In this document: positions 9,296 through 63,769 of the stretch, piece by piece
Layout: every line of letters begins with the position of its first letter
How positions within the stretch are numbered: position 1 is the stretch's first letter
Source of the DNA: Macrostomum lignano
Lineage: Eukaryota
Assembly: GCA_002269645.1 (NCBI GenBank)
Contig: NIVC01000801.1
Span: 1-64,000 of the forward strand
Length of the DNA stretch: 64,000 nucleotides
Reading direction: 5' to 3'
Program-made: the position numbers and the translations under genes
The notes under the pieces: model-generated
The model's database searches: none
What the model saw: the letters and a program-made list of their open reading frames with translations, nothing else
Told to the model about the DNA's origin: nothing

Positions 9296-15553
<6,258 letters not shown>

Positions 15554-44433: not shown

Positions 44434-45333
44434 TTACTTTGAGTAGTATGAATTCACCAGCTCCTCCAGTGAGTTGCCCTGCTGGCCACCGCTAGGCAGC
44501 GCCGCAGGCGGCACGTAGCGCCTCTTCCAGGCGCTCTTGCGTTCCAGACTGTCAACCAGGCGTAAAAAGCGCGGATCTAACTGGGGTAGGCGGAGAGGAC
44601 TCGTGATTGGCTGGGCAGTTTGGTCGACTCTCATTGGCTGGGCGGCTAGATTTCTTCTCATTGGCCAGGAGGCTAGATCGTTTCTTATTGGCTGGGCGGC
44701 TAGGTCACCTCTCATTGGCTGAGCGGCTTGATCGCTTTTCATTGGCTGAGCGGCTTGATCGACTCTAATTGGCCGAGGCGAGTTTTTCTCTCGGTCTCTG
44801 ATTGGTCGAGATGTCATCGATGAGGACAAAGACGGAAATTTGCTATCGCCAGCCCTAAAGCTGCTGGAAAGCGAATCCAGACCGCCGCTTTCACCTCCGT
44901 TACTGCCTTCGGCGTCTGTAGCAGTTGTTTTCGTGAGCAGGTCGCTGCCGCCGCTGTCGCCCAGAGACACCGATCGTCTGATGCCTTCTCGCTCTCGCCG
45001 GAGCCGCTTCTGCTGCTGAGACAGGGCCGCAATTCGCCCTAGCAATGGTTGCTTAGCAACGCTGATCAGGCTATCCCCGTAGCCGGTGAGCAGGCAGTCC
45101 GGCAGGATGTCCAGCGACCTGCTGTACCCGAGTCGGTGCAGACTCTGAAGGTGCAAAGTCTGACGTATGGCGAACTGCTTCATCCAGGTGGTGTCGGAGG
45201 CCTCCTGGCTGAGCTGCTGCTGCTCCAGCTGGGCCAGCGACAGCCGCAGCCGCTGCTCCTCCTGGCTGTTGGGGCCGGAGATCACGGCTGGCACCCTGCT
45301 GACCAGCTGCGCCTTGCGCTGCTGCTGACTCAT
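44434..45333 (-). CDS. Uncharacterised protein, 299 aa, with 9-aa internal repeats and a C-terminal LPQLDPRFLRLVDSL motif
   Basis: Open GC-rich ORF preceded by an ACAGACAG|GCACCTGCC-ATG acceptor; N-terminal helical segment; (AAQPMRxDx)n repeats; no family confidently recognised. Confidence 0.65.
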   Translation of the reverse strand: MSQQQRKAQLVSRVPAVISGPNSQEEQRLRLSLAQLEQQQLSQEASDTTWMKQFAIRQTLHLQSLHRLGYSRSLDILPDCLLTGYGDSLISVAKQPLLGRIAALSQQQKRLRREREGIRRSVSLGDSGGSDLLTKTTATDAEGSNGGESGGLDSLSSSFRAGDSKFPSLSSSMTSRPIRDREKNSPRPIRVDQAAQPMKSDQAAQPMRGDLAAQPIRNDLASWPMRRNLAAQPMRVDQTAQPITSPLRLPQLDPRFLRLVDSLERKSAWKRRYVPPAALPSGGQQGNSLEELVNSYYSK

Positions 45334-45337
45334 GGCA

Positions 45338-45712
45338 GGTGCCTGTCTGTGTCAGGTGAGCCTGTCTGTGTCAGGTGTGCCTGTCTGTGTCAGGTGAGCC
45401 TCTCTGTGTCAGGTGCCTGTCTGTGTCAGGTGCCTGTCTGTGTCAGGTGTGCCTGTCTGTGTCAGGTGCCTGTCTGTGTCAGGTGCCTGTCTGTGTCAGG
45501 TGCCTGTCTGTGTCAGGTGTGCCTGTCTGTGTCAGGTGTGCCTGTCTGTGTCAGGTGTACCTGTCTGTGTCAGGTGCCTGTCTGTGTCAGGTGCCTGTCT
45601 GTGTCAGGTGCCTGTCTGTGTCAGGTGTTCTGTCTGTCTGAGGTGTGCCTGTCTGACTCAGGTGCGTGTTTATGTCAGGTGAGCCTGTCTGTGTCAGGTG
45701 ACTGTCTGTCTC
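45338..45712. repeat. 16-18-bp repeat (CTGTCTGTGTCAGGTGC) abutting the acceptor of the 45333 ORF
   Basis: Seen directly. Confidence 0.92.
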
Positions 45713-47092: not shown

Positions 47093-47381
47093 CGATTTCA
47101 CTTGCAGATGTGCAACCGACAGCTCAGCCGCAGCTATTTGCGCGCCGCATCTGAAGGCTGCGTACGGCTGTTCAATCCAAGGACTGGGGGGTCGCCACAC
47201 ACACCCGCAATTACCCCAGCTAATGCTGGTACCCATTTTACAGCTGGGTGAACTGAAGCAATGCAGAGTTAAGTGTCTTGCTCAAGGACACAAATCGTTT
47301 CGAGAAAAAAATTGAGTCGAGAATCGAACCCCCGACCTTTCATTCGTGAGTCCGACGCTCTGACCACTGGGCTGCAACCCC
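47062..47381 (-). mobile_element. Apparently full-length tRNA-derived SINE, about 320 bp
   Basis: Minus strand: A-box-like GCAGCCCAGTGGTCAGAGCG, B-box GGTTCGATTC, conserved core GTGTCCTTGAGCAAGACACTTAAC..CAGTTCACCCAGCTGTAAAATGGGTACC, tail GCACATCTGCAAGTGAAATCG followed by (ATT)10. Confidence 0.85.
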
Positions 47382-47686: not shown

Positions 47687-50600
47687 TTAAGCCGAAGCTT
47701 CCGCTTTCTCCATGGCGGCGGCGGCGGCTTCAAAGGGCAGCAGAAACCAGCGGCAGCTGTGCTCGTCCTGGCTGAAGCCGTACTCGATCAGCGGCTGGTA
47801 GCCGCCACCCCCGCCGGCTGGACGGTCGCTGAGCCGCTGGGAAATGGGAGTTTTGGGATTTTTGGGATTTTTGGGATTTTTGGGATTTTTGAGATATTTA
47901 GAATTTGTGGGATTTTTTGGAAGTTACTGATTTTTGGGAGCATTGGAAGTTTTGGGATCTTTTGGAGTATTGGGAGTTTTGGGATATTTGGGAGATTTAT
48001 AATTTTTGAGATTCATGGGGTTTTGAGATTTTTGGGATTTTAGGGACCTTTTGGGATTCACGGGAGTTTTGAGAACTTTGGGATCTATGGGACTCATGGG
48101 AGTTTTGGAATTCGGGGGATTTTCGGGAGCTCTGGGAGTTATGAAATTTCTGGGATTTTTAGGGATTTGTGATTTTGAGGATTGTTGGGAATGCATGGGA
48201 TTTTTTGGGATTTCAGGGACTTTTAAGAAGGCCTAGGATTTAATAGTTTTGAACGATTTTGCAGATTTTGAGACTCCAGCCTGGGATTTTAGCGATTCTC
48301 GGGATTATTTGGGTTAAATTTAAAATTTGAAAATTTTCCCATAAATTTTATATCATAAATTTGTGAATTTATTGACTTGAGAAGCCCCGCATCATCAACA
48401 GTTCTCAGACTCCCAACCTTCATGATCCGCTCCTCAGCCGACAGCAGGACAATCTCAGCTCGCCTCGCCATTGTCTGGAAGTTTTTTGTTCAGCAAAGAA
48501 TTCTAAATAAAAAATAAGTCGAATTGCAGATGGGATTGGATCAGAGAGGATCCCAGCTCGGTCTCACATCCAGCCCTTCCACAGTGGGGTGGTTCATGAA
48601 CTGCCTGCTGACATCCACCGCCTCGTTGAAAGCGAAGAAGCAGTCCTGAAGGCTGCACTGCCGAGTCACGAAGTCGCGGTGACGCCACGCGCCCGAGTCG
48701 GGCTCGAGCTCGTACTGACCGTGGGGGGGGGCAGTTGGGACAAACTGGAGTTCCTCAGCACTTTTGCTTATATTTCTACTATAAGTAGTAGGGTAGCTGA
48801 GGAGTTTTTTAATTACTCGTAATTTGGCTCAACCGTGTGGTGAAGTATTTTATTACGAGTATTTTGTCTATGGCCGAAATCTCAACTTCAGATTTGTTCA
48901 GCAACAGTTTGAGGCCTGTACTACGGACACCTACGGACACCTACGGACACCTACGGACACCTAAGGACACCTACGGACACCTACGGACACCTACGGACAC
49001 CTACGGACACCTACGGACACCTACGGACACCTACAGACACCTACGGACACCTACGGACACCTACGGACACATACGGACACCTACGGACACCTACGGACAC
49101 CTACAGACACCTACGGACACCTACGGACACCTACGGACACATACGGACACCTACGGACACCTACAGACACCTACGGACACCTACGGACACCTACAGACAC
49201 CTACGGACACCTACGGACACCTACGGACACCTACAGACACCTACGGACACCTACGGACACCTACGGACACCTACGGACACCTACGGACACATACGGACAA
49301 CTACGGGTACTCAGTTACCTCTGGCAGCAGCTTCCAGCCGTGCTTTGAGACCATCTCGAGCGCTTCGAAAATGTACGCGACCGTTTTATTGGGATAAAAG
49401 TAGGGCAGGTCTATGCAGACTGCGGCAGGTCTGGAGTGCACATGGGGGTGCACATTTTTACTGTCAGTCAGGTTCCTAGATGCAAAATTTTACTGTTACT
49501 TCTAGGAAACTAGGGCAAATAAGTGACTCACTCGAACAGCTCCCGAGCAGATACTCCGGAATGCCTGTTTCAAATCAGTTAGATTAGCAAATATTTACAC
49601 ATTTTAGTTCCTTGCTTGATATTACTTAGTAAGTAGATAAAGTAAGATATACTCGCTCTTTTTTATTTAATAAGCTAAAGTTTAGTCTCACCTCCGGCCC
49701 TCGTGATGGCCTAAGAAATACTCAAACTGCATTGCCAGACGTTGGTCTGAGTGGCGAATCAGATCCTGAAAGAATTACAGGGTTATCGCGTTGTCTTTAT
49801 TTTTTGTGTATAATTGGCATATTCTTACCCCTTTATGACCACCCCACCTCTCGCCCCCACCAAGCACAATGTACATGCCACTATTCAAGTAGCAGCCAAT
49901 AATCTATTTTTAGAAACAGCATCATAGACGTTTTTAGCTCGTAACTTTGCGTACATTTGTGCACCCTCTTCCTTTCTATACCTTACCCCTGCTGGAATGA
50001 CTCACCCAACCCCATAGCCGTGACAATAAAGGCGATGTACGAGCTACATCTAGCAGAGTTATTTTTAGAAACCGGAATTCCCCACTCTGACGCCCTGCTC
50101 CGGCCTAGCTCCAAAAGGTAAAGGGCCAACCAATTGCAGCCAACCTGAAGGCCACACCTGAAAGGAAATCTCCAGCACTCACAGCCAAGTGGCAGCTGCC
50201 CCGCAGAGGCCGCAGGCGGCACTGAACTCCGTAGAGGTCGCTGAGCAGCGCGGCCACGAAGCCGTGGTGCAGCAGGCGGCCGGCGAACTGCGCTGGACGT
50301 ACAAAGAAGGCGAAGATCGGCTGGCGGGCCTGGCGGCGGCTGCCCAGCAGCACGAGGCTCTTCATCGGCTGGAGCACCTCCCAGGCCCAGCTTTTGAAAT
50401 CGAGGTGTGGAAATTGTTTGTTTGTTTACTCCGATCCAATCTGATGCGGCTAGAAAATCCCGGGAGAAATCAGCACTGGAAACTGCTCAGGGGTATTGAA
50501 ATTGAGCTGACTCAGCCTGACTCAGGTCAGGTTTGATTTGGCAAACTGGGAGACTTTAATTTGGGATTGTGCGCCACTGACAGCCTTGATATTTAGCTCT

Positions 50601-53561
50601 GATTTATTGGGACTTCATTGAATTGGGTCTTCATAGTTGAGATTCGGGATTTCTAGACTTTTTATTTTTGGCCTCTCAAATGTGCGAGTCTGGGATTTTC
50701 ACGCTAGGGATTTAAAATTATGGACCTTTCTAAATTTTAATATTTGAGATTTACAGATTGAGATTCCCATAGTTGGGATTTCCAGATTGGGATTTCCAGA
50801 TTGGGATTTCCAGTTTTGGGATTCAAGAAGCGGGATTTCAAAGATTCGGGATTCCGGACCCTGCCCGCCTCACCGGACCAGCTCGCACTCGCGGTCGCGA
50901 ATCTCCTCCTCGCCGACGCTTCGCCACAGTTTGAAGGCGAGGCCGCAGCGAATCCGCCCAACCAGCCCGTCCATCTCACCGTCGCCATAGTCCGCGGCGG
51001 CCTCCTCCGCCGGCGCCGACACCAAGCATGATCCGCCGTCCCAGTCGCCGGCATCCTCCTCACCCTCATCCTCAGCTTCCGCCTCAGCCTCCAAGCCCTC
51101 AACGAATTCCCTGAGCCGCCGCCTGTCGGCCACCAGGAGGCCCGCGCTGCCCCCGCCACCCAGCAGGCGGTCCGGCGCCAGCAGCGCCGCGTCCAGGGCG
51201 CCAATCGACGCCAAGGCGCCAGCCGCTCCGGCGCCGGCCGAGGCCAAGTCCCACACCAGCAGGCCGCCGCGGGACCTGACGGCGCTCGCCAACGCAGCGG
51301 CGGCTGCCAGCGGCTCGGCGGCCCCCGTCACGTCGCAGGCGGCGCCGACCAGAGCAACGACCCGCCGACATCCGGCATCGTCGGCCAGGCGGTCAAGCGC
51401 CGACGTCGGCGAGTTCAGCGACGCTGCAGACAGCCGGGCGCTGGCGAAGACCAGGCGGCGCCAATGCCGCTGGGTTGCGTCGCTTGCATCGCCGACGCCT
51501 TCCGGGACGTCGCAGTCGTACGGGCCGACGAGAAGCCCGAGGCGCGGCTGCCGCTGCCGGCGCCTTCGCCCAGTCTGGTCGCAGCGGCGCCGTCGTTGCA
51601 GAGCCGCCGCCAGCCAGTCGGCCAGGCAGCGCGAAGCGTCGCCGACGCTCCAGCCGACGTGTTGGACGGCGAAGTCGGTGACGCCGAGCTGCAGCGCCTT
51701 GCGGATCTGCCGGTCGGCGTCTGCCAGGAAGCGGCCGGTCTGGCGGCTGGCGGTGCCACCTGCTGGCGCCGGCGCCGCAACAAACGGCAGCACGGAGGCC
51801 TGAAGGAAGTCCTCGATGCAGCGCAGGTGGCTGCGGGCGCCCGGAAGCGTGGAAAATCCGCCATCATTGAGAGCAAATTTTGGGATTTCAGAGGAAATTC
51901 CCTCAACAAATTTGAGGGCAGTCCCGCCTGGAGAATGAAAAAATTCCCTACTGAAGAATGCGAGAAATTCCCCTCTCAAGACTTTGAGAAGATCCCGTAA
52001 ATTCCTCTGAAGAATGTGAGAAATTCTCCTAAAGAATGTGAGAAATTCTCCTGAAGAATATGAGAAATTCTCCTAAAGAATGTGAGAAATTCTCCTGAAG
52101 AATTTGAGAAATTATTTTGAAGAATGTGGGAGTTTTATTTGAAGAATGAGAGAAATTCCCCCGAGGAATGTGGGAAATTCCCCTCACAAGATTTTGAGAA
52201 GTTCCCGAAATTTCCACTGAAGAATTTGAGTAATTCCCTTGAAGACTGTGAGTAATTTCGCTGAAGAATGATAGAAATTTCCCTCGAGGAATGTGCGAAA
52301 TTCCCCTGGAGAATGTGAGAAATTTCCCTTGAAGAATGTGAGAAATTTCCCTTGAAGAATGTGAGAAATTTCCCTTGAAGAATGTGAGAAATCTTCCTTG
52401 AAGAATGTGAGAAATTTCCCTTGAAGAATGTGAGAAATTTCCCTTGAAGAATTTGAATAATTCCCTGAAGAATGAGAGAAATTTCCCCAGAGGAATATGA
52501 GAAATTCCCCTGGAGAATGTGAGAAATTTCCCTTGAAGAATGTGAGAAATTTCCCCCGAGGAATATGAGAAATTTCCCTTGAAGAATGTGAGAAATTTCC
52601 CTTGAAGAATGTGAGAAATTTCCCTTGAAGAATGTGAGAAATTTCCCTTGAAGAATGTGAGAAATTTCCCTTGAAGAATGTGAGAAATTTCCCCCGAGGA
52701 ATATGAGAAATTTCCCTTGAAGAATGTGAGAAATTTCCCTTGAAGAATGTGAGAAATTTCCCCCGAGGAATATGAGAAATTTCCCTTGAAGAATGTGAGA
52801 AATTTCCCTTGAAGAATGTGAGAAATTTCCCCCGAGGAATATGAGAAATTTCCCTTGAAGAATGTGAGAAATTTCCCTTGAAGAATGTGAGAAACTACAT
52901 CATTGGAAATTCTCCATTGAAAGTGAGCTCCCTATAGAAAAATCTATCGGAAAAGATGGGACATCCCTCCTGAATAATGCGAGATGGTCTCTCCCTCTAA
53001 AAGCCTCCCTTTCTGATTGACGCGATTCCCAGAATCTCGGGAAGCACGCAGAGACCTGTGCAGTTCAAATCCAAATCCAGACTGCAATGGAAACAAAACA
53101 GGACAACCTGCTCAGAAGAGCAGCCCGGATCCCTGTGCGGACTTATCGAATGCATTTGCGAGCTCCCAAGCTCCGCCTCACTCCGAATCCACGGGCCCGA
53201 GGAGGTCTTTCAAATGACTTTAATTAACCGAGCTTCTGCCCCACCTCTGCGCTCTGCTCAGGTGACTCTCCCGTCCTGCCCTTCTTCCCGCGCTCTTGCC
53301 GCGCGACAGCCAGATCCCATGAGCTACTAAAGGCTGCTCCACCCAGGCTGTTTCATTAGAAATATCCCCTCAGGGACAGTTCGAGGTTGGGGGACGAGGG
53401 GAGTTTAGAAGGCGAGTTCGACCCCCCCCCCCGACTCGCAGAAGAGTCCTGTGCTCTATGTACTCTCGGCCTGGCTGTCTCTGTGTCTCTCAGCGCACCT
53501 GTCCATCGAGCAGGGGAATAATCAGGCTCAGCTGCAATTACATCTTTTTCCTATCTTGCAC

Positions 53562-53641
<80 letters not shown>

Positions 53642-56600
53642 GCCTCTCCGCTTTCTCGGGCTTCTTCTGCTCAGGACTTTTACTCGATATTAGTCTGTGT
53701 TTGTGCAGCTCTTTCAGCAGCAGCAAAGTTTGGACTACTCATTAATCCTGTTTGAGGATTAACTAAATCTCTGCCGATGCTGGTGGGAAGTTTAGGGATG
53801 GTTTTAGAGGGGGTCTAGGAGAGTCTATGGTAGCCTAGGGAGTGTAGAGAGCCTAGGGTAGTCTTGGGAAGTCTAGGAGTATCCTAAAGAGTTTAGTAGC
53901 GTATTCTAGGGGGATATAGCAGTGTGTAAGGATTGTGTAGGGTAGTCTAGGGTAGTCTAAGGTAGTCTAGATAGTCTAGAGTAGTCTAGAGTAGTCTAGG
54001 ATAGCCTAGAGTAGTCTAGGGTAGTCTAGGGTAGTCTGGGGTAGTCTAGGTTAGTCTAGGGTAGTCTAGGGTAGTCTAAGGTAGTCTGGGGTAGTCTAGG
54101 GTAGTCTAGGGTAGTCTAGGGTAGTCTAGGATAGTCTAGGGTAGTCTAGGGTAGTCTAGGGTAGTCTAGGGTAGTCTAGAGTAGTCTAGGGTAGTCTAGG
54201 GTAGTCTAAGGTAGTCTGGGGTAGTCTAGGGTAGTCTAGGGTAGTCTAGGGTAGTCTAGGGTAGTCTAGGGTAGTCTAGATAGTCTAGAGTAGTCTAGAG
54301 TAGTCTAGGATAGCCTAGAGTAGTCTAGGAAAGACTAGGATAGACTAGGGTAGAGTAGGATAGTCCAAGGGTAGTCTAGTGTAGTCTGGGATAGTCTAGG
54401 GTAGTCTAAGGTAGTCTGGGGTAGTCTAGGGTAGTCTAAGGTAGTCTGGGGTAGTCTAGGGTAGTCTAGGGTAGTCTAGGGTAGTCTAGGGTAGTCTAGA
54501 GTAGTCTAGGATAGCCTAGAGTAGTCTAGGAAAGACTAGGATAGACTAGGGTAGAGTAGGATAGTCCAAGGGTAGTCTAGGGTAGTCTGGGATAGTCTAG
54601 GGTATTCTAGAATAGTCTAAGGTAGTATCGAGTAGTCTAGAGTAGTCTAGGGTAGTCTAGGGTAGTCTTTTGAAACTCAATAGTAGACATTAGAGTTTTA
54701 GAATAGTCGATGAGCAAAGCTGGTTTGGCCAACTCACCGTCCAGTGGCTGAGAAGTCGCAGAAGATCACTGAAAGCAGAGAGCGCATTGCTCATTAATAA
54801 TATCGCGGATCAAACAAGACGATTAGCTAATGAAGTTAAAAAATTTTCACACCCTTTCTAAGGCCGTAGGGCCCAACAAAGCAGGCATCCGAGCCGATCA
54901 TGTTCCGGAACAGGTAGTCCATTTTGCACCTGGCCGAGCTCAGCGCCTCCGCCCTTCGCCAGTCGTCCGTCACGGACTGGAAGAGAAGGGGGGAGAGACT
55001 GGAGTGACAATAGATCAGTGACAGACAGATTGGAGTGACAATAGATTAGAGTTGCAGACAGATTGGAGTGACAACAGATCAGAGTGACAGACAGATTGGA
55101 ATGACACTTGATTGGAGTTACAATAGATCAGAGTGACAGACAGATTGGAGTGACGCTAGATCAGAGTGACAGACAGATAGGACTTGGAGTACAACAGATC
55201 AGAGTGACAGACAGATTGGAGAGACAATATATCAGAGTGACAGTCATTGGTGTGACAATACGTAGATCAGAGTAACAGATCGATTGGAGTGACACTTAAT
55301 TGGAGTGACAATAGATCAGAGTGACAGACAGATTGGAGAGACAATATATCAGAGTGACAGTCACTGGTGTGACAATAGATCAGAGTAACAGATCGATTGG
55401 AGTGACACTTAATTGGAGTGACAATAGATCAGAGTGACAGACAGATTGGAGAGACAATATATCAGAGTGACAGTCACTGGTGTGACAATAGATCAGAGTA
55501 ACAGATCGATTGGAGTGACACTTAATTGGAGTGACAATAGATCAGAGTGTCAGACAGATTGGAATGATAATAGATCAGAGTGACAGACAGATAGGACTTG
55601 GAGTACAACAGATCAGAGTGACAGACAGATTGGAGAGACAATATATCAGAGTGACCGTCATTGGTGTGACAATACGTAGATCAGAGTAACAGATCGATTG
55701 GAGTGACACTTAATTGGAGTGACAATAGATCAGAGTGACAGACAGATTGGAGAGACAATATATCAGAGTGACAGTCACTGGTGTGACAATAGATCAGAGT
55801 AACAGATCGATTGGAGTGACACTTAATTGGAGTGACAATAGATCAGAGTGACAGACAGATTGGAGAGACAATATATCAGAGTGACAGTCACTGGTGTGAC
55901 AATAGATCAGAGTAACAGATCGATTGGAGTGACACTTAATTGGAGTGACAATAGATCAGAGTGTCAGACAGATTGGAATGATAATAGATCAGAGTGACAG
56001 ACAGATTGGAATTACAATAGATCAGAGTGACAGACAGATTGGAGTGACAGACAGATTGGAGTAACAATAGATCAGAGTGACAGACAGATTGGAGTGACAG
56101 ACAGATTGGAGTGACAGACAGATTGGAGTGACAGACAGATTGGAGTGACAGACAGATTGGAGTAACAATAGATCAGAGTGACAGACAGATTGGAATTACA
56201 ATAGATCAGAGTGACAGACAGATTGGAGTGACAGACAGATTGGAGTAACAATAGATCAGAGTGACAGACAGATTGGAGTGACAGACAGATTGGAGTGACA
56301 GACAGATTGGAGTGACAGACAGATTGGAGTAACAATAGATCAGAGTGCAAGACAGATTGAAGTGACAACAAATCAGAGTGACAGACAGATTGGAGTGAGA
56401 CAAGATTTGAGTAATAGTTAATTGGAGTGACAGATTATTGGAGTGACAGATGACTGCAGTGACAAATGATTGGAGTGACAGATGATTGGAGTGACAGATG
56501 ATTGGAGTGACAAATGATTGGAGTGACAGATGATTGGAGTGACATTTGAGTGCAGTGACAAATGACTGGAGTGACATATGATTGGAGTGACATATGAGTG

Positions 56601-57308
56601 GAGTGACAGATTTATTGGAGTGACAAATGACTGGAGTGCACACAGACGGTCAGGAAAGTCTACAGATTAAACTTCAACAAGAACGGCCTCCTTCCTTCAG
56701 GCTGACGATCTCACCTCAAGCTTCTTCTCAAAGTACTGCGCCTTGGTCACGTAGCCGCTGCAGTCCAGTTCGTAGTTCAGAGCACCGCTGAAGGACCTGG
56801 ACACTGAGCTGTGAACAGAGGGAGATGCTTGATGATGATGCTGCTGCTGCTGATGCTCAATTCTCGCAATATCTGGCAGATGCGAAGTTGATCCCGAGGT
56901 TCGAATCCGCTGCTGATTTTGTCGATTTCTTATCGGATATTGATGGCGCTGTGACTGCTGATGAGGCTGACTTCTTGGCGGAGTCTGGGAGCACTGCTTC
57001 CTGGGCAGGGGGATCCTGCTGCCAACGAACACGGGGACCTCCTTGTACTTGTCCAGCATTATTGGAGGCCGGTGGTTCTTCACCTGCTGGTTGCTGGGGC
57101 GGTACTGCCTGCGCATACCTGTGCTCGGCTGGTCTGTGTCAAAATTATGGCCGGCCACGAATGACAGCCGGGTGAAATACGATTTCCGGACAGGGGCCGG
57201 AGGGGGGTTAACAGAGGACTCCGGCCAGTGCTTGAGATGAGGCGAAATTCGCTTCCATTGGATGGGACGAATATGCAGGCTCGGTGTGCGGAGGCTGGGG
57301 TTGGCCAA
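47687..57308 (-). CDS. Class-V aminotransferase / cysteine-desulfurase-fold protein lacking catalytic residues; 10 exons traced, 5' end unresolved
   Basis: Exons (minus): about 57308-56715, 54976-54853, 54768-54738, 51830-50874, 50390-50183, 49765-49692, 49430-49319, 48714-48568, 48474-48418, 47836-47687; all junctions GT-AG and in phase. Family motifs: DYLFRNMIG..FVGPYGLRKVIFCDFSATGR.L..IEDFL...VLP, VGPY, CDVTG, VWDLA, LLGGGGSAGLLV, RIRCGLAFKL, PIFAF..LLHHGFVAALLSDLYGVQ, RP....DLPYF, HGWKLLP.Y..EP.SG.WRH, RWFLLP.EA. Confidence 0.85.
47845..48300. repeat. Degenerate GGGATTTTT intronic repeat
   Basis: Last intron of the aminotransferase-fold gene. Confidence 0.8.
48921..49303. repeat. 10-bp intronic repeat (CTACGGACAC)
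   Basis: Seen directly. Confidence 0.97.
52000..52896. repeat. 23-bp intronic repeat (GAAGAATGTGAGAAATTTCCCTT)
   Basis: Period read from 52331 to 52354. Confidence 0.93.
53567..53639. repeat. (CT)n microsatellite
   Basis: Seen directly. Confidence 0.97.
53935..54668. repeat. 10-bp intronic repeat (GGGTAGTCTA)
   Basis: Seen directly. Confidence 0.95.
54995..56640. repeat. Compound intronic array built on TTGGAGTGACA/GATCAGAGTGACAGACAGA, with larger repeated blocks of about 114 bp
   Basis: Blocks beginning GATCAGAGTGACAGACAGATTGGAGAGACAATATATC recur several times between 55200 and 55870. Confidence 0.9.
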
Positions 57309-57339
57309 TGTAGCGGCGAATAGATGAAGGCATCAAAAG

Positions 57340-58160
57340 GAGGGTGACGATGATGAAGCTTCTGATGATTCTGGAGGGTGATAATGATGAAGCTTCTGAT
57401 GATTCTGGAGGGTGACGATGATGAAGCTTCTGATGATTCTGGAGGGTGATGATGATGAAGCTACTAATGATTCTGGAGGTGATGATGATGATGAAGCTAC
57501 TGATGATTCTGGAGAGTGACGATGATGATGAAGCTACTGATGATTCTGGAGAGTGACGATAATGAAGCTTCTGATGATTCTGGAGGTGATGATGATGATG
57601 AAGCTACTGATGATTCTGGAGGGTGACGATGATGAAGCTTCTGATGATTCTGGAGGGTGATGATGATGAAGCTACTGATGATTCTGGAGGGTGACGATGA
57701 TGAAGCTTCTGATGATTCTGGAGAGTGACGATGATGAAGCTACTGATGATTCTGGAGAGTGACGATAATGAAGCTTCTGATGATTCTGGAGGTGATGATG
57801 ATGATGAAGCTACTGATGATTCTGGAGGGTGACGATGATGAAGCTTCTGATGATTCTGGAGGGTGATGATGATGAAGCTTCTGATGATTCTGGAGGGTGA
57901 CGATGATGAAGCTTCTGATGATTCTGGAGGGTGATGATGATGAAGCTACTAATGATTCTGGAGGTGATGATGATGATGAAGCTTCTGATGATTCTGGAGG
58001 GTGACGATGATGAAGCTTCTGATGATTCTGGAGGGTGACGATGATGAAGCTTCTGATGATTCTGGAAGTGATGATGATGAAGCTACTGATGATTCTGCAG
58101 GTTGATGATGATGAAGCTACTGATGATTCTGCAGGCTGATGATTCTGGAGAGTGATGATG
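57340..58160. repeat. About 33-bp repeat (GATGAAGCTTCTGATGATTCTGGAGGGTGAC)
   Basis: Seen directly. Confidence 0.93.
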
Positions 58161-58521: not shown

Positions 58522-59226
58522 TCTTAAAACGGAACTCTTTAAATAGTGACAATTTGCACTGGCTCTGACACGTTCTGCTGCTAAGAGGCTTGAGACTACG
58601 GAGAACCCCCCCCCCAGTGAGAAGGCACAGAAACCATATTTTTCCTCGTCATTCGAATTTTCATTATCAAAAGTTGCTTCAACCCAATTCTGATATTTCC
58701 TAGCCGACCGAGAGCTCCCAGCAGTGCTGGAGCGCCGCCCACTCACCGCAGCCTGGCTGCTCTGTGTAACAGAAATGCCACGGGAGGGGGGGGGAGAGAC
58801 GAGACGGGATCAGAGCTCAAGACACTCCCTAACTCAGTCCTCGCCTATTGATTTTCGTCTTGATCAGCGATTTGCGGCTGTTCCCAGCTCACCGCGCTTG
58901 ACAACCACCCTCTCCTTCCCAGTACTGTGCCCCCAGAATTCAAGGAGTTTCCAACTGCAGCAGTGCTGGGTAGGCGGGAGCCCACCGCCCCGCACGCGGG
59001 AATCAATACATATCGATTCTGCGCTCCCAGCGCTCTCTGTCTTGCACAAATCGATTCCAATATTTGATATTTTCCCAACTGGAAATATTCGCGCTGAGAA
59101 GCTTGGGCTAGAAGACACATACACAATTTTTTAAATAAAATTCCTGATATTTTCCGCGCAAAAAAGCAGCGAAATGCCGCAACAGCCCCAGCTCGCACTG
59201 GAACGCTAGACCGCAGTCAAACTCTG

Positions 59227-59240
59227 GTTACCATGGCAAC
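59227..59240. promoter_or_regulatory. RFX X-box GTTACCATGGCAAC overlapping the SLC17 start codon
   Basis: Exact fit to GTTNCCATGGNAAC; the central ATG is the predicted start at 59233. Confidence 0.45.
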
Positions 59241-60016
59241 CGAGGAGGCCAAGAAAGAATCTTCCTCGCCGCCGCCAGACGAAGGCGACGACAAGGCGAG
59301 CCTGATGGACCAGCTGGACTCCAAGTGCGTCATCCGCAAGCGCTACGTTGTCTGCCTCCTGTGCTTCCTCGGCATGGTGATCATCCACTCCATGCGGGTG
59401 AACATCGCCATCACGGTCGTCACCATCCTGGACAAGGCGCCGCACGAGAAGGTCGGCAGCAGCAAGCGGGCGCAGGAGCTGCCGGACGTCGACTGGACGC
59501 CCACCATGGTCGGCGTGCTGCACTCCGTCTTCTACGTCGGCTTCCTGATCACCCAGGTGCCCGGCGGTTACCTAGCAACGAAACTGCCGACCAACCGGTG
59601 GGCCTGGCATGACATTCATTTGCTCACCTGCACCACTCGCTCGCGTCTTCGCTCAGCTGTTGCAAGCATGCATGGGCTTGTGCGATGAGTCTGTCTAAGC
59701 CCTCCCCAAATCTCCATCTGCTTCTCCCTCTCCCTCTCCCTCTCCCTCTCCCTCTGCTTCTCACTCTCCCTCTCCCTCTCCCTCTGCTTCTCCCTCTCTC
59801 CCTCTCCCTCCATCTCCCTCTCCCTCTCTCCCTCTCCCTCTCCCTCTCTCCCTCTACCTCTCCCTCTCTCTCCCTCTCCCTCCCTCTCTCTCTCCCTCTC
59901 CCTCTCCCTTGCCCTGACAAAGAATTTACCTAATTCGAAATATCGGCAACTTAAATCAACTTGACTTGTTTGTCCTTTTTACATGTACCGCGTCCGTGCC
60001 TGAGATTTGAGGCGCC

Positions 60017-60064
<48 letters not shown>

Positions 60065-63000
60065 CTCCCTCCCTCTCCCTCTCCCTCTCTCCCTCTACCT
60101 CTCCCTCTCCCTCTACCTCTCCCTCTCTCTCCCTCTCCCTCCCTCTCCCTCTCCCTCTCCCTCTCCCTCTCTCTCTCCCTCTCTCTCTCCCTCTCCCTCT
60201 CAGTTTCCTACTCCCTCTCTTTCTTTCTCCCCCCTCTCTCTCCCTCTTCAACAGTCTCGTTCCCCTTGTCTCCCAATCCATCCCTATATTGCACTCGTAA
60301 GCAGCAATAAGTCAAGAATGCTTCGCCATCTCCCTGAGCACAGATCGCCCTAAAGCAGACATGCGCAGTGCAAGGATTTGACGTCGCCTATCGATTGGCA
60401 AATCCTTTAGAATCTGAGCTCCTATAACCCGTGAACTCGAAACTCAAGCCCAAGAGTAGGTTTATCGAGCGTCAGTACAGAGCTGTGTGTGCAGGTAGAC
60501 TTGGCTTCAGTGGCTTTTCGAGCTCTTTAGGCGGGGGAAAGACGGACAGGTACGGACGGGGGCACTCACGGGAGCAGTCTCAACTGATATGGGTGCCTAA
60601 TCCGTTGAGACGGATCAAGCATTCGTGTACTTTTGTCAATCCCTGATCTCGGTAATCCGCCGTCCCCCCATCCGCGATAAACAGGATATTCGGGCTGTGT
60701 ATCTGCCTGTCCTGCGCGCTGAACCTCCTGCTGCCCACCGCCATCGCCAATGTGGGCTTCATCTTCACCTGCTCTGTCAGGGTTGTGCAGGGACTGCTGG
60801 AGGTGAGGCTGCGGCTGTGTCAGCAAATGCGTCAGCGAATGTGTCAGCGAATGTGTCAGCGAATGTGTCAGCGAATGTGTCAGCGAATGCGTCAGCAAAT
60901 GCGTCAGCGAATGTGTCAGCGAATGTGTCAGCGAATGTGTCAGCGAATGTGTCAGCGAATGCGTCAGCAAATGCGTCAGCGAATGTGTCAGCGAATGTGT
61001 CAGCGAATGTGTCAGCGAATGTGTCAGCGAATGTGTCAGCGAATGTGTCAGCGAATGTGTCAGCGAATGTGTCAGCGAATGTGTCAGAGAATATGTCAAA
61101 TATACGTCAGCAAAAAATATCAGTGGGCCAGCAAATGTCAGTGAATCCGTTAGTGGATGAGTAAGACAATGTGTCAGGCAATGTGTGAGCTAGCGTATCC
61201 GTGAATGTGTCAGTGAATCTATCAGGAAATGTGTCAGCTATTGTATCCGTAAATGTGTCAGTGAATCTATCAGGGAATGTGTCAGCTAGTGTATCCGTGA
61301 ATGTATCAGTGAATCTATCAGGGAATGTGTCAGCTAGTGTATCCGTGAATGTGTCAGTGAATCTATCAGGGAATGTGTCAGCTAGCGTATCCGTGAATGT
61401 GTCAGTGAATCTATCAGGAAATGTGTCAGCTATTGTATCCGTAAATGTGTCAGTGAATCTATCAGGGAATGTGTCAGCTAGTGTATCCGTGAATGTATCA
61501 GTGAATCTATCAGGGAATGTGTCAGCTAGTGTATCCGTGAATGTGTCAGTGAATCTATCAGGGAATGTGTCAGCTAGTTCACCTACACAAACATGAACAA
61601 CCTAAATGAACAACCTCGCAGGGAGCCGTGATCCCCACCATGTACAAAATCGTGAACGACTGGTCGCCGAGAATGCAGCGCAGCTCCTTCGCGTCGTTCT
61701 GCATCACCGGTGAGCACTGCAACGCTTTTGAATTGTAAAATCATCAATATTTTGATATTAGCAATATATAAGCACTCTTTGCTACTGTCAGTAGGCGGAA
61801 ACGCATCAGAGAATTCAGATGGATCCCAGGATCCCAAACTGATTCGAATCTGAAATAATGTGTAAAAAATGCACAAACGACCTGGGCTCGCGCACCCCGC
61901 AGGCATGTACGCCGGTGCCATCATCGGATTTCCCCTGGACGGCATGATCACCCACTACGCCAACTGGCAGTACATGTTCTACATCCACGCCGTCTTCGGC
62001 TTCGTCTGGTTCTTCTTTTGGTTCCTGTTCGTCTACGAGCGTCCCGAGTTCGATCCCTCGGTAAAGGACGACGAGAAAAAGCTGATCATGGCGGGCAGAG
62101 ACCAGGTGGTCGAGCTGGACAAGGTGCCTTGGAAAGCAATTTTTACCAGCTTGCCCGTGTGGGCGGTGATGGTGTGCCACTTCGTGCGCAGCTGGATGTT
62201 CTTCTTCCTACTGACAAATGAGCCCGCTTTTCTGAACATGTTCAACTTCTCCATTGTGGAGGTGCGTTTGCCTTTGCTGCAATTTTATTAGTCTCCACTC
62301 TGCCAACCACCCACTCTGCCAACCACCCCACTCCGCCAGCCATTCGCCAACCACCCCACTCCGCCAACCACCCCACTCTGCCAACCACCCCACTCCGCCA
62401 ACCACCCCACTCTGCCAACCACCCCACTCCGCTAACCACCCCACTTCGCCAACCACCTCACTCCGCTAACCACCCCACTTCGCCAACCACCTCACTCCCC
62501 CAACCACCCCTCTCTGCCAACCACCACCTCCGCCAACCACGCCACTCCGCCAACCACCTGTCCACCTCACTCCGTTGTTAAACTTTTGCACAAAACAGAA
62601 CGGCATATTCTCGGCCACGCCGCACCTGCTGAAAGTTCTCTGCTGTATTCTGGGCGGCATAGTGGCCGACATTGTACTGCTAAAGTCGCCTTGCTCGCTC
62701 ACGAATGTCAGAAAGATGTTCACCTGTTTCGGTAAGTCAGGAAATTCGATTGACAAAGGCTAACTTTTCTTTTTCTGTCAAATCGTCACTGCTACCGATC
62801 CTGCAGGCTTCGGCATCGAGGCGATGTGCTGCTACGCGCTGTCCCGAGTGCAGCAGGGCTACGTCGCCATTGTGTTCCTCAACCTGGGCGTTGGCTGCTC
62901 CGGTCTCACCGTGGCCGGCTGGCAGGTAAATCACCTGGACTTGGCGCCCCAGTTTGCGTCCGTTTTGGCCGGCATTTCGGCCAGCTTTGGCACCATTGGC

Positions 63001-63769
63001 GGCATTCTGTCGCCCATTGTTGTGGGCATCATTACGCATCCGCAGGTGAGTTGGCAACCTGGATGTTACTGTTATTAACTTGAAAGTGTGAGCAAGTGAA
63101 TGCTTGCGTATCCATGTGCATTTAAGTCTGCGTGCTCAGGGCCATGACTGCTGGCCTCTCAAAAGCACTCCTGCAAACTAAACTGTCACTCACTCTTCGG
63201 ACATTCACTAACATTCGCTCATGAATAAATGTTAAGTTCATTGCGAAAATCACCATTTTAGACACTTTGGAACTGGCAAAAGTCGTTCATTCTCACTGGA
63301 ACCGTGCTGGCCGCTGGAGTCATATTTTATTTCTTTCTGGGGTCTGGTAAGTACATTCTAGATGGCTGTTTGACCTAGTCAATGTACTTTAATAGATCGA
63401 TTCGATCTATAGCAAGTGTACAGCCATCCATCTGTTCTTAACCCAAGCCCAGCCAATCACAGATTAGAGCTTTCTCACCCGCTGACTAGCAAGTGTACAA
63501 TAGAGTCATACTCCTAGCCTCCTAGCCCACTACTGACTAGCAAGTGTACATCACCAGAGTGTACATTAGCCCGCCCCACCCACCCCCCGATCAAAGGCGA
63601 GCTTCAACCGTGGGCTGCTGCTAAAGTCGAGTCGGGCGAGGAGAAATCAAAGCCGCCAGACGTCAAAGAGGGCGATGAGTCGCAGCAGCTCAAGGGGGGA
63701 CCGGCGGTGACAAATTACAGCAGCGTGGACCCGTCGCCGCCAGCCCAGCAGCAGGAGAGTGAGACTTGA
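59233..63769 (+). CDS. SLC17-family anion transporter, vesicular glutamate transporter (VGLUT/EAT-4)-like, about 519 aa, 8 exons
   Basis: Exons 59233-59597, 60685-60802, 61622-61709, 61903-62261, 62599-62731, 62807-63045, 63262-63346, 63597-63769; GT-AG, in phase. Motifs KRY...[67 protein letters not shown]. Confidence 0.93.
59700..60260. repeat. CT-rich tracts in SLC17 intron 1
   Basis: Two blocks separated by unique sequence at about 59920-60015. Confidence 0.88.
60830..61578. repeat. 12-bp CAGCGAATGTGT repeat (60830-61090) and related 48-bp repeat (61195-61578) in SLC17 intron 2
   Basis: The 48-bp unit is four diverged 12-mers sharing GAATGTGTCAG. Confidence 0.92.
62295..62570. repeat. 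About 17-bp intronic repeat (CCAACCACCCCACTCCG)
   Basis: SLC17 intron 4. Confidence 0.9.

Follow-up and report, generated by a model that had tools for sequence, protein, structure and literature searches.

A SufS-like gene of Macrostomum lignano with a lost active site and an open ten-exon reading frame: a putative cysteine desulfurase pseudoenzyme

Introduction

What is left of an enzyme when the residues that carried its chemistry have disappeared and the frame that encodes it is still open? This question is raised by a gene on the minus strand of a 64,000-nucleotide stretch of the genome of the flatworm Macrostomum lignano (assembly GCA_002269645.1, contig NIVC01000801.1, positions 1 to 64,000; the whole stretch is called the window below), where it extends from 47687 to 57116. 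A first-pass annotation had described it as a desulfurase-like gene deprived of its catalytic residues and maintained for a non-catalytic role. Cysteine desulfurases initiate all cellular sulfur trafficking, and those of the SufS type have their active site, which binds pyridoxal phosphate (PLP), at the dimer interface. In our view the gene is probably translated and would be a cysteine desulfurase paralogue, of the SufS type (type II), that has gone catalytically dead, a reading in which we have rather more confidence than doubt.

Results

A divergent relative of SufS

Searches of Pfam and of the PDB sequences with the protein alone gave no significant match, the best direct Pfam match being Aminotran_5 in the C-terminal third (E=0.21, not significant). 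By an exhaustive phmmer search the protein could be linked to 1453 relatives; 38 reach E<=1e-30, and the intact members go down to E=2.9e-51. They are proteins of 550-750 amino acids (aa), annotated as 'probable cysteine desulfurase' or uncharacterised, and they are found in amphioxus, sea stars, sea urchins, a bivalve, an annelid, a rotifer, an octopod, a choanoflagellate, a chytrid, a green alga and bacteria. Pfam Aminotran_5 (PF00266) recognises the intact members at 5e-44, and TIGR01979 SufS does so at 6e-44, below its trusted cut-off, so that they form a distinct SufS-like subfamily. The family profile aligns with solved SufS structures over ~380 positions (E=1e-48), placing EHHSN on EHHAN, SPHK on SGHK and RGGCACAGP on RAGHHCAQP, so that the second Cys of the family loop is the persulfide Cys and corresponds to SufS Cys364. 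When the window protein was modelled with AlphaFold2 on an alignment of 40 relatives (pLDDT 78, pTM 0.82), the top Foldseek matches of the model were all SufS structures (target-normalised TM-score 0.70-0.74). These comparisons place the gene, as a strongly diverged member, in a SufS-like family (type II cysteine desulfurase, Aminotran_5) that is uncharacterised, and its proposed homology to the class-V PLP enzymes of the SufS/NifS type is upheld. Word-index protein searches yielded, besides one bacterial match, two M. lignano models, both chimeric; as one of them (P0002) was missed the second time, the negatives of these searches carry no weight.

The domain order is that of the family members of Branchiostoma (XP_066305031), Asterias (XP_033625079), Capitella (R7TN41) and M. 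lignano itself (A0A1I8IG06), with 24-35% identity and the same N-terminal (IGxDxxFxGPFGxR...YCDYTASGR) and C-terminal (KPGFxRxNLPYF, GWKLLPxY, RWFxLPxEA) motifs; these members keep all the catalytic motifs, whereas the window gene keeps about half of the invariant residues and lies on a branch about five times longer. The likeness to SufS and CsdA is that of a fold-type-I PLP architecture, in which EHH[AS]N, S[GP]HK and R-x-G-x-x-C-A-x-P line up with the family profile, and the pyridine-binding Asp is present in the window protein too. The Schiff-base Lys, the persulfide Cys, the two His and the phosphate loop of these enzymes are all missing from the window protein, which carries acidic and basic low-complexity insertions; compared with SufS, it adds the C-terminal extension of ~200 aa typical of the family and an N-terminal Q-rich region. 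In shrimp, sea star and insects the SufS-like part forms a fusion protein with a TtcA-like PP-loop domain at the C-terminus (P0033, P0147, P0024, P0085, P0015), which in the Penaeus fusion matches NF007972 at 1e-60; by the logic of domain fusion, sulfur for tRNA thiolation would probably come from this family.

What has become of the active site

The substitutions were read from two alignments, one ungapped and one gapped, together with the profile-to-SufS alignment. ANTHT has become AAPAP, the phosphate loop GSGxTxA reads GWSVGDAS, SAASNVTG reads GAACDVTG, and REEGGTP reads YGDGEMD. The stacking motif GPxEHHSNxLPW is replaced by GPYDCDVPEG, an insertion of 10 aa and HW, and in both alignments EHHSN falls on DCDVP with both His gone; the first-pass annotation had read the motif as PYDCDV. 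The Lys loop KDAxFxSPHKFxGGPGTPG reads LDAALLAPDRLLGGGGSAG, in which SPHK has turned into APDR (His to Asp, Lys to Arg); this change, also noted earlier, appears in both alignments, and the equivalence of the positions follows from the profile of the family against SufS. In the region of the catalytic Cys, the family sequence QARGGCACAGPY corresponds to QCRLRPLRGSCH, and RGGCACAGPY to RLRPLRGSCH. The loss of the persulfide Cys, claimed as a change to Arg, holds in either alignment, the Arg itself only in the more parsimonious ungapped one; the gapped alternative has Leu at this position and puts a Cys of the window protein under the first Cys of the family. One Cys (Cys571, in GSCHL) lies three residues past the old catalytic position, the loop motif being gone. 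GGGTV was thought to have been replaced by an acidic stretch; instead, it is degraded to GGSCL, with a 16-aa acidic insertion immediately ahead, and this region corresponds to the one that forms the type-II beta-hairpin (PMC8300815).

What is kept is little: the pyridine-binding Asp, as proposed, with WDYA read as WDLA and the residue (core D276) invariant in 41/41 aligned sequences, and the Asp of KDA (now LDA) and the GG of the Lys loop. Lys is absent from core residues 127-381, that is, from the 255 residues of the PLP domain, so there is no substitute for the Schiff-base Lys. As far as its residues tell, the window protein cannot form the internal aldimine or the persulfide.

The two low-complexity insertions are lineage-specific; the acidic one is predicted to be disordered, and the basic one (RRRRCDQTGRRRRQRQPR) resembles a nuclear localisation signal and is modelled at low confidence (pLDDT 65-74). 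Exons 4-5 (50183-51830) show a strong shift toward Ala, Arg, Gly and Leu; their guanine-plus-cytosine (GC) content is 0.74-0.79 at first (GC1) and 0.48-0.57 at second (GC2) codon positions, against 0.51-0.67 and 0.32-0.50 in the neighbouring genes, and the flanking introns have 42-46% GC.

An intact sister gene

The first-pass annotation had suggested looking for a paralogue that is still catalytically intact, and M. lignano has one, A0A1I8IG06 (P0006): it keeps GNTHS, EHHSN, SPHK and RAGCACAGPY, and 73/74 of the near-invariant columns, against 44-49% in the window protein. The two genes are sisters in 199 of 200 bootstrap neighbour-joining trees, with branches of 1.09 (window) and 0.21 (P0006) substitutions per site. 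Sea star and sea urchin are divided by branches no longer than that of P0006, which hints at an old duplication. Both proteins have Q-rich N-termini, and their mutual alignment begins ~30 residues before the usual start of the family; the N-terminal extension would therefore predate the duplication, and it is neither an addition of the dead copy nor as long as the ~200 aa first given, since ~105 aa precede the homologous region. In exact-sequence look-ups neither P0006 nor the open reading frame (ORF) of exon 4 was on record, an absence that is uninformative because it extends to the intact paralogue.

The state of the reading frame

In 745 codons and nine introns there is no disabling lesion, be it a stop, a frameshift or a broken splice site. 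How many would have been expected was estimated by simulating neutral substitution with region-specific divergence and the GC-rich composition of each region: ~3.2 stops would be expected for the PLP domain, where a stop-free outcome has P=0.04, and ~3.4 for the flanks, where it has P=0.03, with a joint P of ~0.001. This simulation replaced a uniform one (50% identity, whole core, 0/1000 runs free of stops), as exon 4 is GC-rich and far more diverged. All 14 window-specific indel blocks preserve the frame (14/14, a few of which may be alignment artefacts), not one of the 36 splice-site dinucleotide bases has been altered, even next to the two micro-exons, and GC at third codon positions (GC3) is 0.55-0.89, like the 0.67-0.82 of the neighbouring genes and sharply unlike the introns (27-51% GC); composition and codon structure have not decayed toward the non-coding background. 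The stop simulations, the frame-preserving indels, the splice sites and GC3 make neutral decay of the reading frame unlikely, and support the maintenance proposed earlier, in which selection rather than chance would have kept it.

The retention of conserved residues is uneven among the segments of the core (chi-square p=1e-4): 0.68 in the N-terminal part (core 1-100), 0.29-0.39 in the PLP domain (101-372), 0.75 in 373-460, 0.50 in 461-520 and 0.87 in the C-terminal part (521-651). The survival of the scaffold motifs, as originally stated, is true of the N- and C-terminal parts, and does not extend to the PLP domain or to the overall count of invariant residues. A comparable distribution is found in members of the family that have degenerated independently (butterfly, beetle, ant and one Logan transcript): they have lost overlapping columns, those of the active-site motifs, and share with the window gene the N-terminal, scaffold and C-terminal columns that are kept (odds ratios 2.5-3.7, Fisher p=0.002-0.013).

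The gene model and its database counterparts

The coding sequence, rebuilt, has 10 exons (Table 1) and 9 canonical GT-AG introns with consistent phases, and runs without an in-frame stop to the TAA at 47687-47689, as first described. The donors are GTGAG in 7/9 introns and GTGTG and GTAAC in the other two, the acceptors are YAG or AAG in 9/9, and every junction, including those around the micro-exons of 31 and 33 nucleotides (nt), aligns gap-free and length-exact to homologues. The frame is open upstream to 57332, with no ATG between 57332 and 57116, so the protein would start at 57116 if there is no further exon, either upstream or trans-spliced; with this first ATG the predicted product has 745 aa, or 755 aa with an alternative acceptor of exon 9, and not the ~820 codons originally counted. 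Splicing at 48744, the acceptor first chosen for that exon, would likewise keep the frame but would insert the 10 residues FVPTAPPHGQ, which no relative has; the acceptor 30 nt downstream, 48714 (cag-TAC), follows a long polypyrimidine tract, fits the GWKLLPxY spacing of the family, is the site used in the UniProt model P0002, and is to be preferred. A possible cassette exon within intron 9 is used by both older UniProt models and lies outside the regions conserved in the family.

These two UniProt models of M. lignano, A0A1I8F4I8 and A0A1I8F844, match the locus and its neighbours (window 43534-63763). Both are chimeric: they continue into the downstream gene (43.5-45.4 kb) or take in stretches antisense to the transporter gene upstream, and their names ('RING-type...', 'Exostosin domain-containing') are misleading. 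The blocks in which they differ from the window are exactly the window's other reading frames, and the same occurs inside the neighbouring gene, which points to indel errors of the older ML2 assembly, with 31.9% error-free bases and fewer intact ORFs according to the Mlig_3_7 paper (PMC5730564). The idea that P0001 and P0002 were independent copies was rejected, their differences being such frame-switch errors.

Table 1. Positions, in the window, of the parts of the SufS-like gene and of other features (strand + or -)
Feature	Position	Strand	Remarks
Exon 1	56715..57116	-	CDS (coding sequence) from ATG 57116; Q/P/S/H-rich N-terminal region and start of homologous region, final ~30 aa aligning to P0006; donor GTGAGA
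Exon 2	54853..54976	-	SVTDDWRR...NMIGSDACFVGPYGLRK, family N-terminal motif IGxDxxFxGPFGxR; acceptor cttccag, donor GTGTGA
Exon 3 (31-nt micro-exon)	54738..54768	-	VIFCDFSATGR (family YCDYTASGR); acceptor tttcag, donor GTGAGT; both junctions length-exact in alignment to P0006
Exon 4 (957 nt, 73% GC)	50874..51830	-	Entire PLP-binding large domain, motifs degraded
NTHT to APAP	51758-51781	-	Exon 4
GSGxT to GWSVGD	51632-51655	-	Exon 4
Basic insertion	51542-51595	-	Exon 4; RRRRCDQTGRRRRQRQPR
EHHSN to DCDVP	51497-51526	-	Exon 4
SAASNVTG to GAACDVTG	51323-51346	-	Exon 4
WDYA to WDLA	51242-51256	-	Exon 4
SPHK to APDR	51167-51178	-	Exon 4
Acidic insertion, 16 aa	51041-51091	-	Exon 4; AEAEAEDEGEEDAGDW (run also given as EAEAEAEDEGEEDAGDW)
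GGGT to GGSC	51026-51040	-	Exon 4
EGGTP to DGEMDG	50966-50983	-	Exon 4
Exon 5	50183..50390	-	Small-domain start; RQPIFAF and LHHGFVAALLSDLYGVQ conserved
Degraded catalytic-Cys loop	50189-50218	-	Exon 5; RLRPLRGSCH
Exon 6	49692..49765	-	DLIRHSDQRLAMQFEYFLGHHEGR; acceptor tttcag, donor GTGAGA
Exon 7 (33-nt micro-exon)	49532..49564	-	HSGVSARELF; acceptor aaacag, donor GTGAGT
Exon 8	49319..49430	-	PAAVCIDLPYFY...VSKHGWKLLPE; family-specific C-terminal extension, well conserved
Exon 9	48568..48714 (or 48744)	-	YELEPDSGAWRH...; preferred acceptor 48714
Candidate optional cassette exon (57 nt, in frame)	48418..48474	-	TMARRAEIVLLSAEERIMK, within intron 9; good acceptor ttccag, weak donor GTTGGG
Exon 10	47687..47836	-	Family C-terminal RWFxLPxEA as CRWFLLPFEA (47726-47755); stop TAA 47687-47689
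MFS/SLC17-like transporter	59098-63135	+	Pfam MFS_1 2.7e-15
Trichoplein-like TPH-domain coiled-coil ORF	10364-11194	-	Pfam 6e-08
Q-rich ORF	44437-45351	-	No Pfam match

Surroundings of the gene

The window consists of GC-rich coding blocks between AT-richer introns packed with tandem repeats. The five longer introns of the gene (1, 3, 4, 8 and 9) hold tandem arrays with periods of 2, 9, 10, 14, 22/23, 10/30 and 16/33/113/414, and a 34-bp tandem array adjoins its 5' end; the arrays lie at 47845-48224, 48921-49306, 50744-50855, 51999-52894, 53565-53638, 53813-54668, 54996-56646 and 57339-58143, and many of them yield long spurious ORFs in several frames. On the minus strand, ~300 bp 3' of the stop (47300-47380), there is a tRNA-like sequence, with a T-arm GGTTCGATTC and then a T-run; a tRNA gene at this position was rejected, as neither ARAGORN nor Rfam calls one, and the sequence may be a degenerate tRNA or a fragment of a short interspersed element (SINE).

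Discussion

The explanation that we favour is that a gene duplication in the Macrostomum lineage would have produced the window gene, while its sister A0A1I8IG06 keeps every catalytic motif. What the copy has lost is the Schiff-base Lys with its neighbouring His, the two His of EHHSN, the phosphate loop, NTHT, the type-II beta-hairpin region and the persulfide Cys; of the PLP site the pyridine-binding Asp alone is left. Most of what is conserved lies in the N-terminal arm, in the C-terminal small domain and in the C-terminal extension peculiar to the family. The protein would be translated, would keep its overall fold and would act by protein-protein contacts rather than by catalysis, the likely contacts being the surfaces that are still conserved. 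These contacts could be: (i) the binding, through the small domain and the C-terminal extension, of the sulfur-acceptor partner of the family, probably a TtcA-like tRNA thiolation enzyme given the fusions in shrimp, sea star and insects; or (ii) a dimer with the intact paralogue, in which it would serve for regulation or as an adaptor, and for which the 'dominant-negative' dimer partner of the first-pass annotation is one possible, candidate role. Of the maintained non-catalytic paralogue proposed there, the catalytic loss, the intact paralogue and the retention of the frame stand; the survival of the PLP-domain scaffold for the most part does not.

A number of observations weigh against this explanation. 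The window protein keeps just 44-49% of the family-invariant residues, against 99% in the paralogue, and where conserved residues have been replaced, the new ones are no closer in kind to the old than random single-nucleotide changes would make them, so that the PLP domain looks almost unconstrained at the residue level; moreover, retention is no higher in the more conserved columns. Exon 4 is very GC-rich, and since its other frames carry 0-7 stops, its open frame alone is weak evidence. The AlphaFold2 fold is driven by the alignment of intact relatives, and a run on the single sequence (pLDDT 37) is uninformative on foldedness. P0006 is itself a model from the error-prone ML2 assembly, and its branch may be inflated, which weakens the argument for an old duplication; and the entries for the locus in the protein databases are limited to the two chimeric UniProt models. 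Some of these points would also be natural if the gene were a functionless, decaying duplicate, that is, an unprocessed pseudogene that lost its constraint very recently, was spared stops by its GC-rich, stop-poor sequence, and was noticed because it happened to be open: the 51-56% of invariant residues lost, the random character of the replacements, the roughly flat retention over conservation classes and the near-openness of exon 4 in several frames all agree with it, no expression evidence turned up (the exact-sequence look-ups, as said, miss the intact paralogue equally), and recent duplication in M. lignano has been extensive (PMC5730564). We nevertheless consider such a pseudogene unlikely, although to be taken seriously, because the absence of stops is improbable even when region-specific rates and a GC-rich equilibrium are granted, because the indel blocks, the splice sites around the micro-exons and the codon-position GC structure are those of a coding gene, and because retention is significantly heterogeneous, reaching 87% at the C-terminus.

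The old pocket could, on the other hand, have been put to a new use, whether as an enzyme or as a ligand binder, holding PLP non-covalently, holding another ligand, or relying on the chemistry of Cys571. The pyridine-binding Asp, the Asp of LDA and the GG of the Lys loop would fit such a change, as would a Cys near the old catalytic position, which one alignment sets under the first Cys of the family, and a long branch that could reflect positive selection; however, nearly all the PLP contacts have been lost (phosphate loop, stacking His, Asn, the His-Lys pair and the beta-hairpin), no Lys is found anywhere in the PLP domain, and the replacements give no sign of a new conserved pocket, so that we hold this to be improbable. 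More improbable still is that the whole picture is an artefact of the gene model or of the assembly, in which other exons or frames would restore the catalytic motifs or the locus would be mis-assembled. The two UniProt models do read parts of the gene in other frames and join them to neighbouring genes, and the 5' end and the possible cassette exon are provisional; but the frame switches recur in the neighbouring gene, as is typical of ML2 indel errors (PMC5730564), all the family motifs are ordered in one frame of single exons, and HHSN, PHK and GCxCAGP are encoded in no frame of exon 4 or exon 5.

If the gene is, as we believe, the dead paralogue of a desulfurase, it belongs to a well-known kind, that of the pseudoenzymes, and by analogy there is a precedent for a dead paralogue of a PLP enzyme in the antizyme inhibitor (AZIN1/2), which derives from the ornithine decarboxylase lineage as its catalytically dead paralogue and binds the partner of the active enzyme. 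The likeness is one of concept only, a PLP-enzyme paralogue without cofactor binding or catalysis: the antizyme inhibitor is of fold type III and not I, acts in another pathway, is found in vertebrates and is experimentally established, whereas the partner binding of the window protein is putative. Closer by descent are the insect fusions (Parnassius CAK1589211, Diorhabda XP_056640818, Temnothorax XP_071641002) and the Logan transcript P0097, in which NTHT, HH, the His of SPHK, EGGTP and the Cys loop have been lost independently; the SufS-like domain of Parnassius is undetected by Pfam, like the window protein. They differ in having a PP-loop/TtcA-like domain and long linkers, several keep the Lys, the Cys or both, and they are not orthologues of the flatworm gene. 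The TtcA cysteine motifs of Parnassius look degenerate as well. Our literature searches found no described catalytically dead paralogue of a cysteine desulfurase, and nothing relevant on the animal SufS-like/TtcA fusion or on this gene in Macrostomum; the window gene is lineage-specific and fast-evolving, and its parent family is uncharacterised.

In practical terms, UniProt represents the locus solely by chimeric, frame-shifted and misleadingly named models. As M. lignano is a transgenic model tractable by RNA interference (PMC5730564), the pseudoenzyme reading is directly testable. If expressed, the gene would amount to a type II desulfurase whose functions have been separated in nature, a variant in which the partner-facing N- and C-terminal parts persist without the chemistry, and it would help to define the role of the animal SufS-like/TtcA-associated family and its regulation through dimer or acceptor contacts. 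One may go a step further, with little assurance, and suppose that the animal family, as partner of a TtcA-like tRNA-thiolation domain or fused to one, has a second, non-catalytic role residing in the N-terminal arm and the C-terminal extension. This role would survive catalytic death, and the flatworm copy would be a subunit dedicated to it, regulatory or adaptor in nature, in a pair with the intact paralogue or with the sulfur acceptor of the latter. This conjecture is doubtful, but if true it would explain why a flatworm, several insect orders and one further lineage have independently lost the active site while retaining the ORF.

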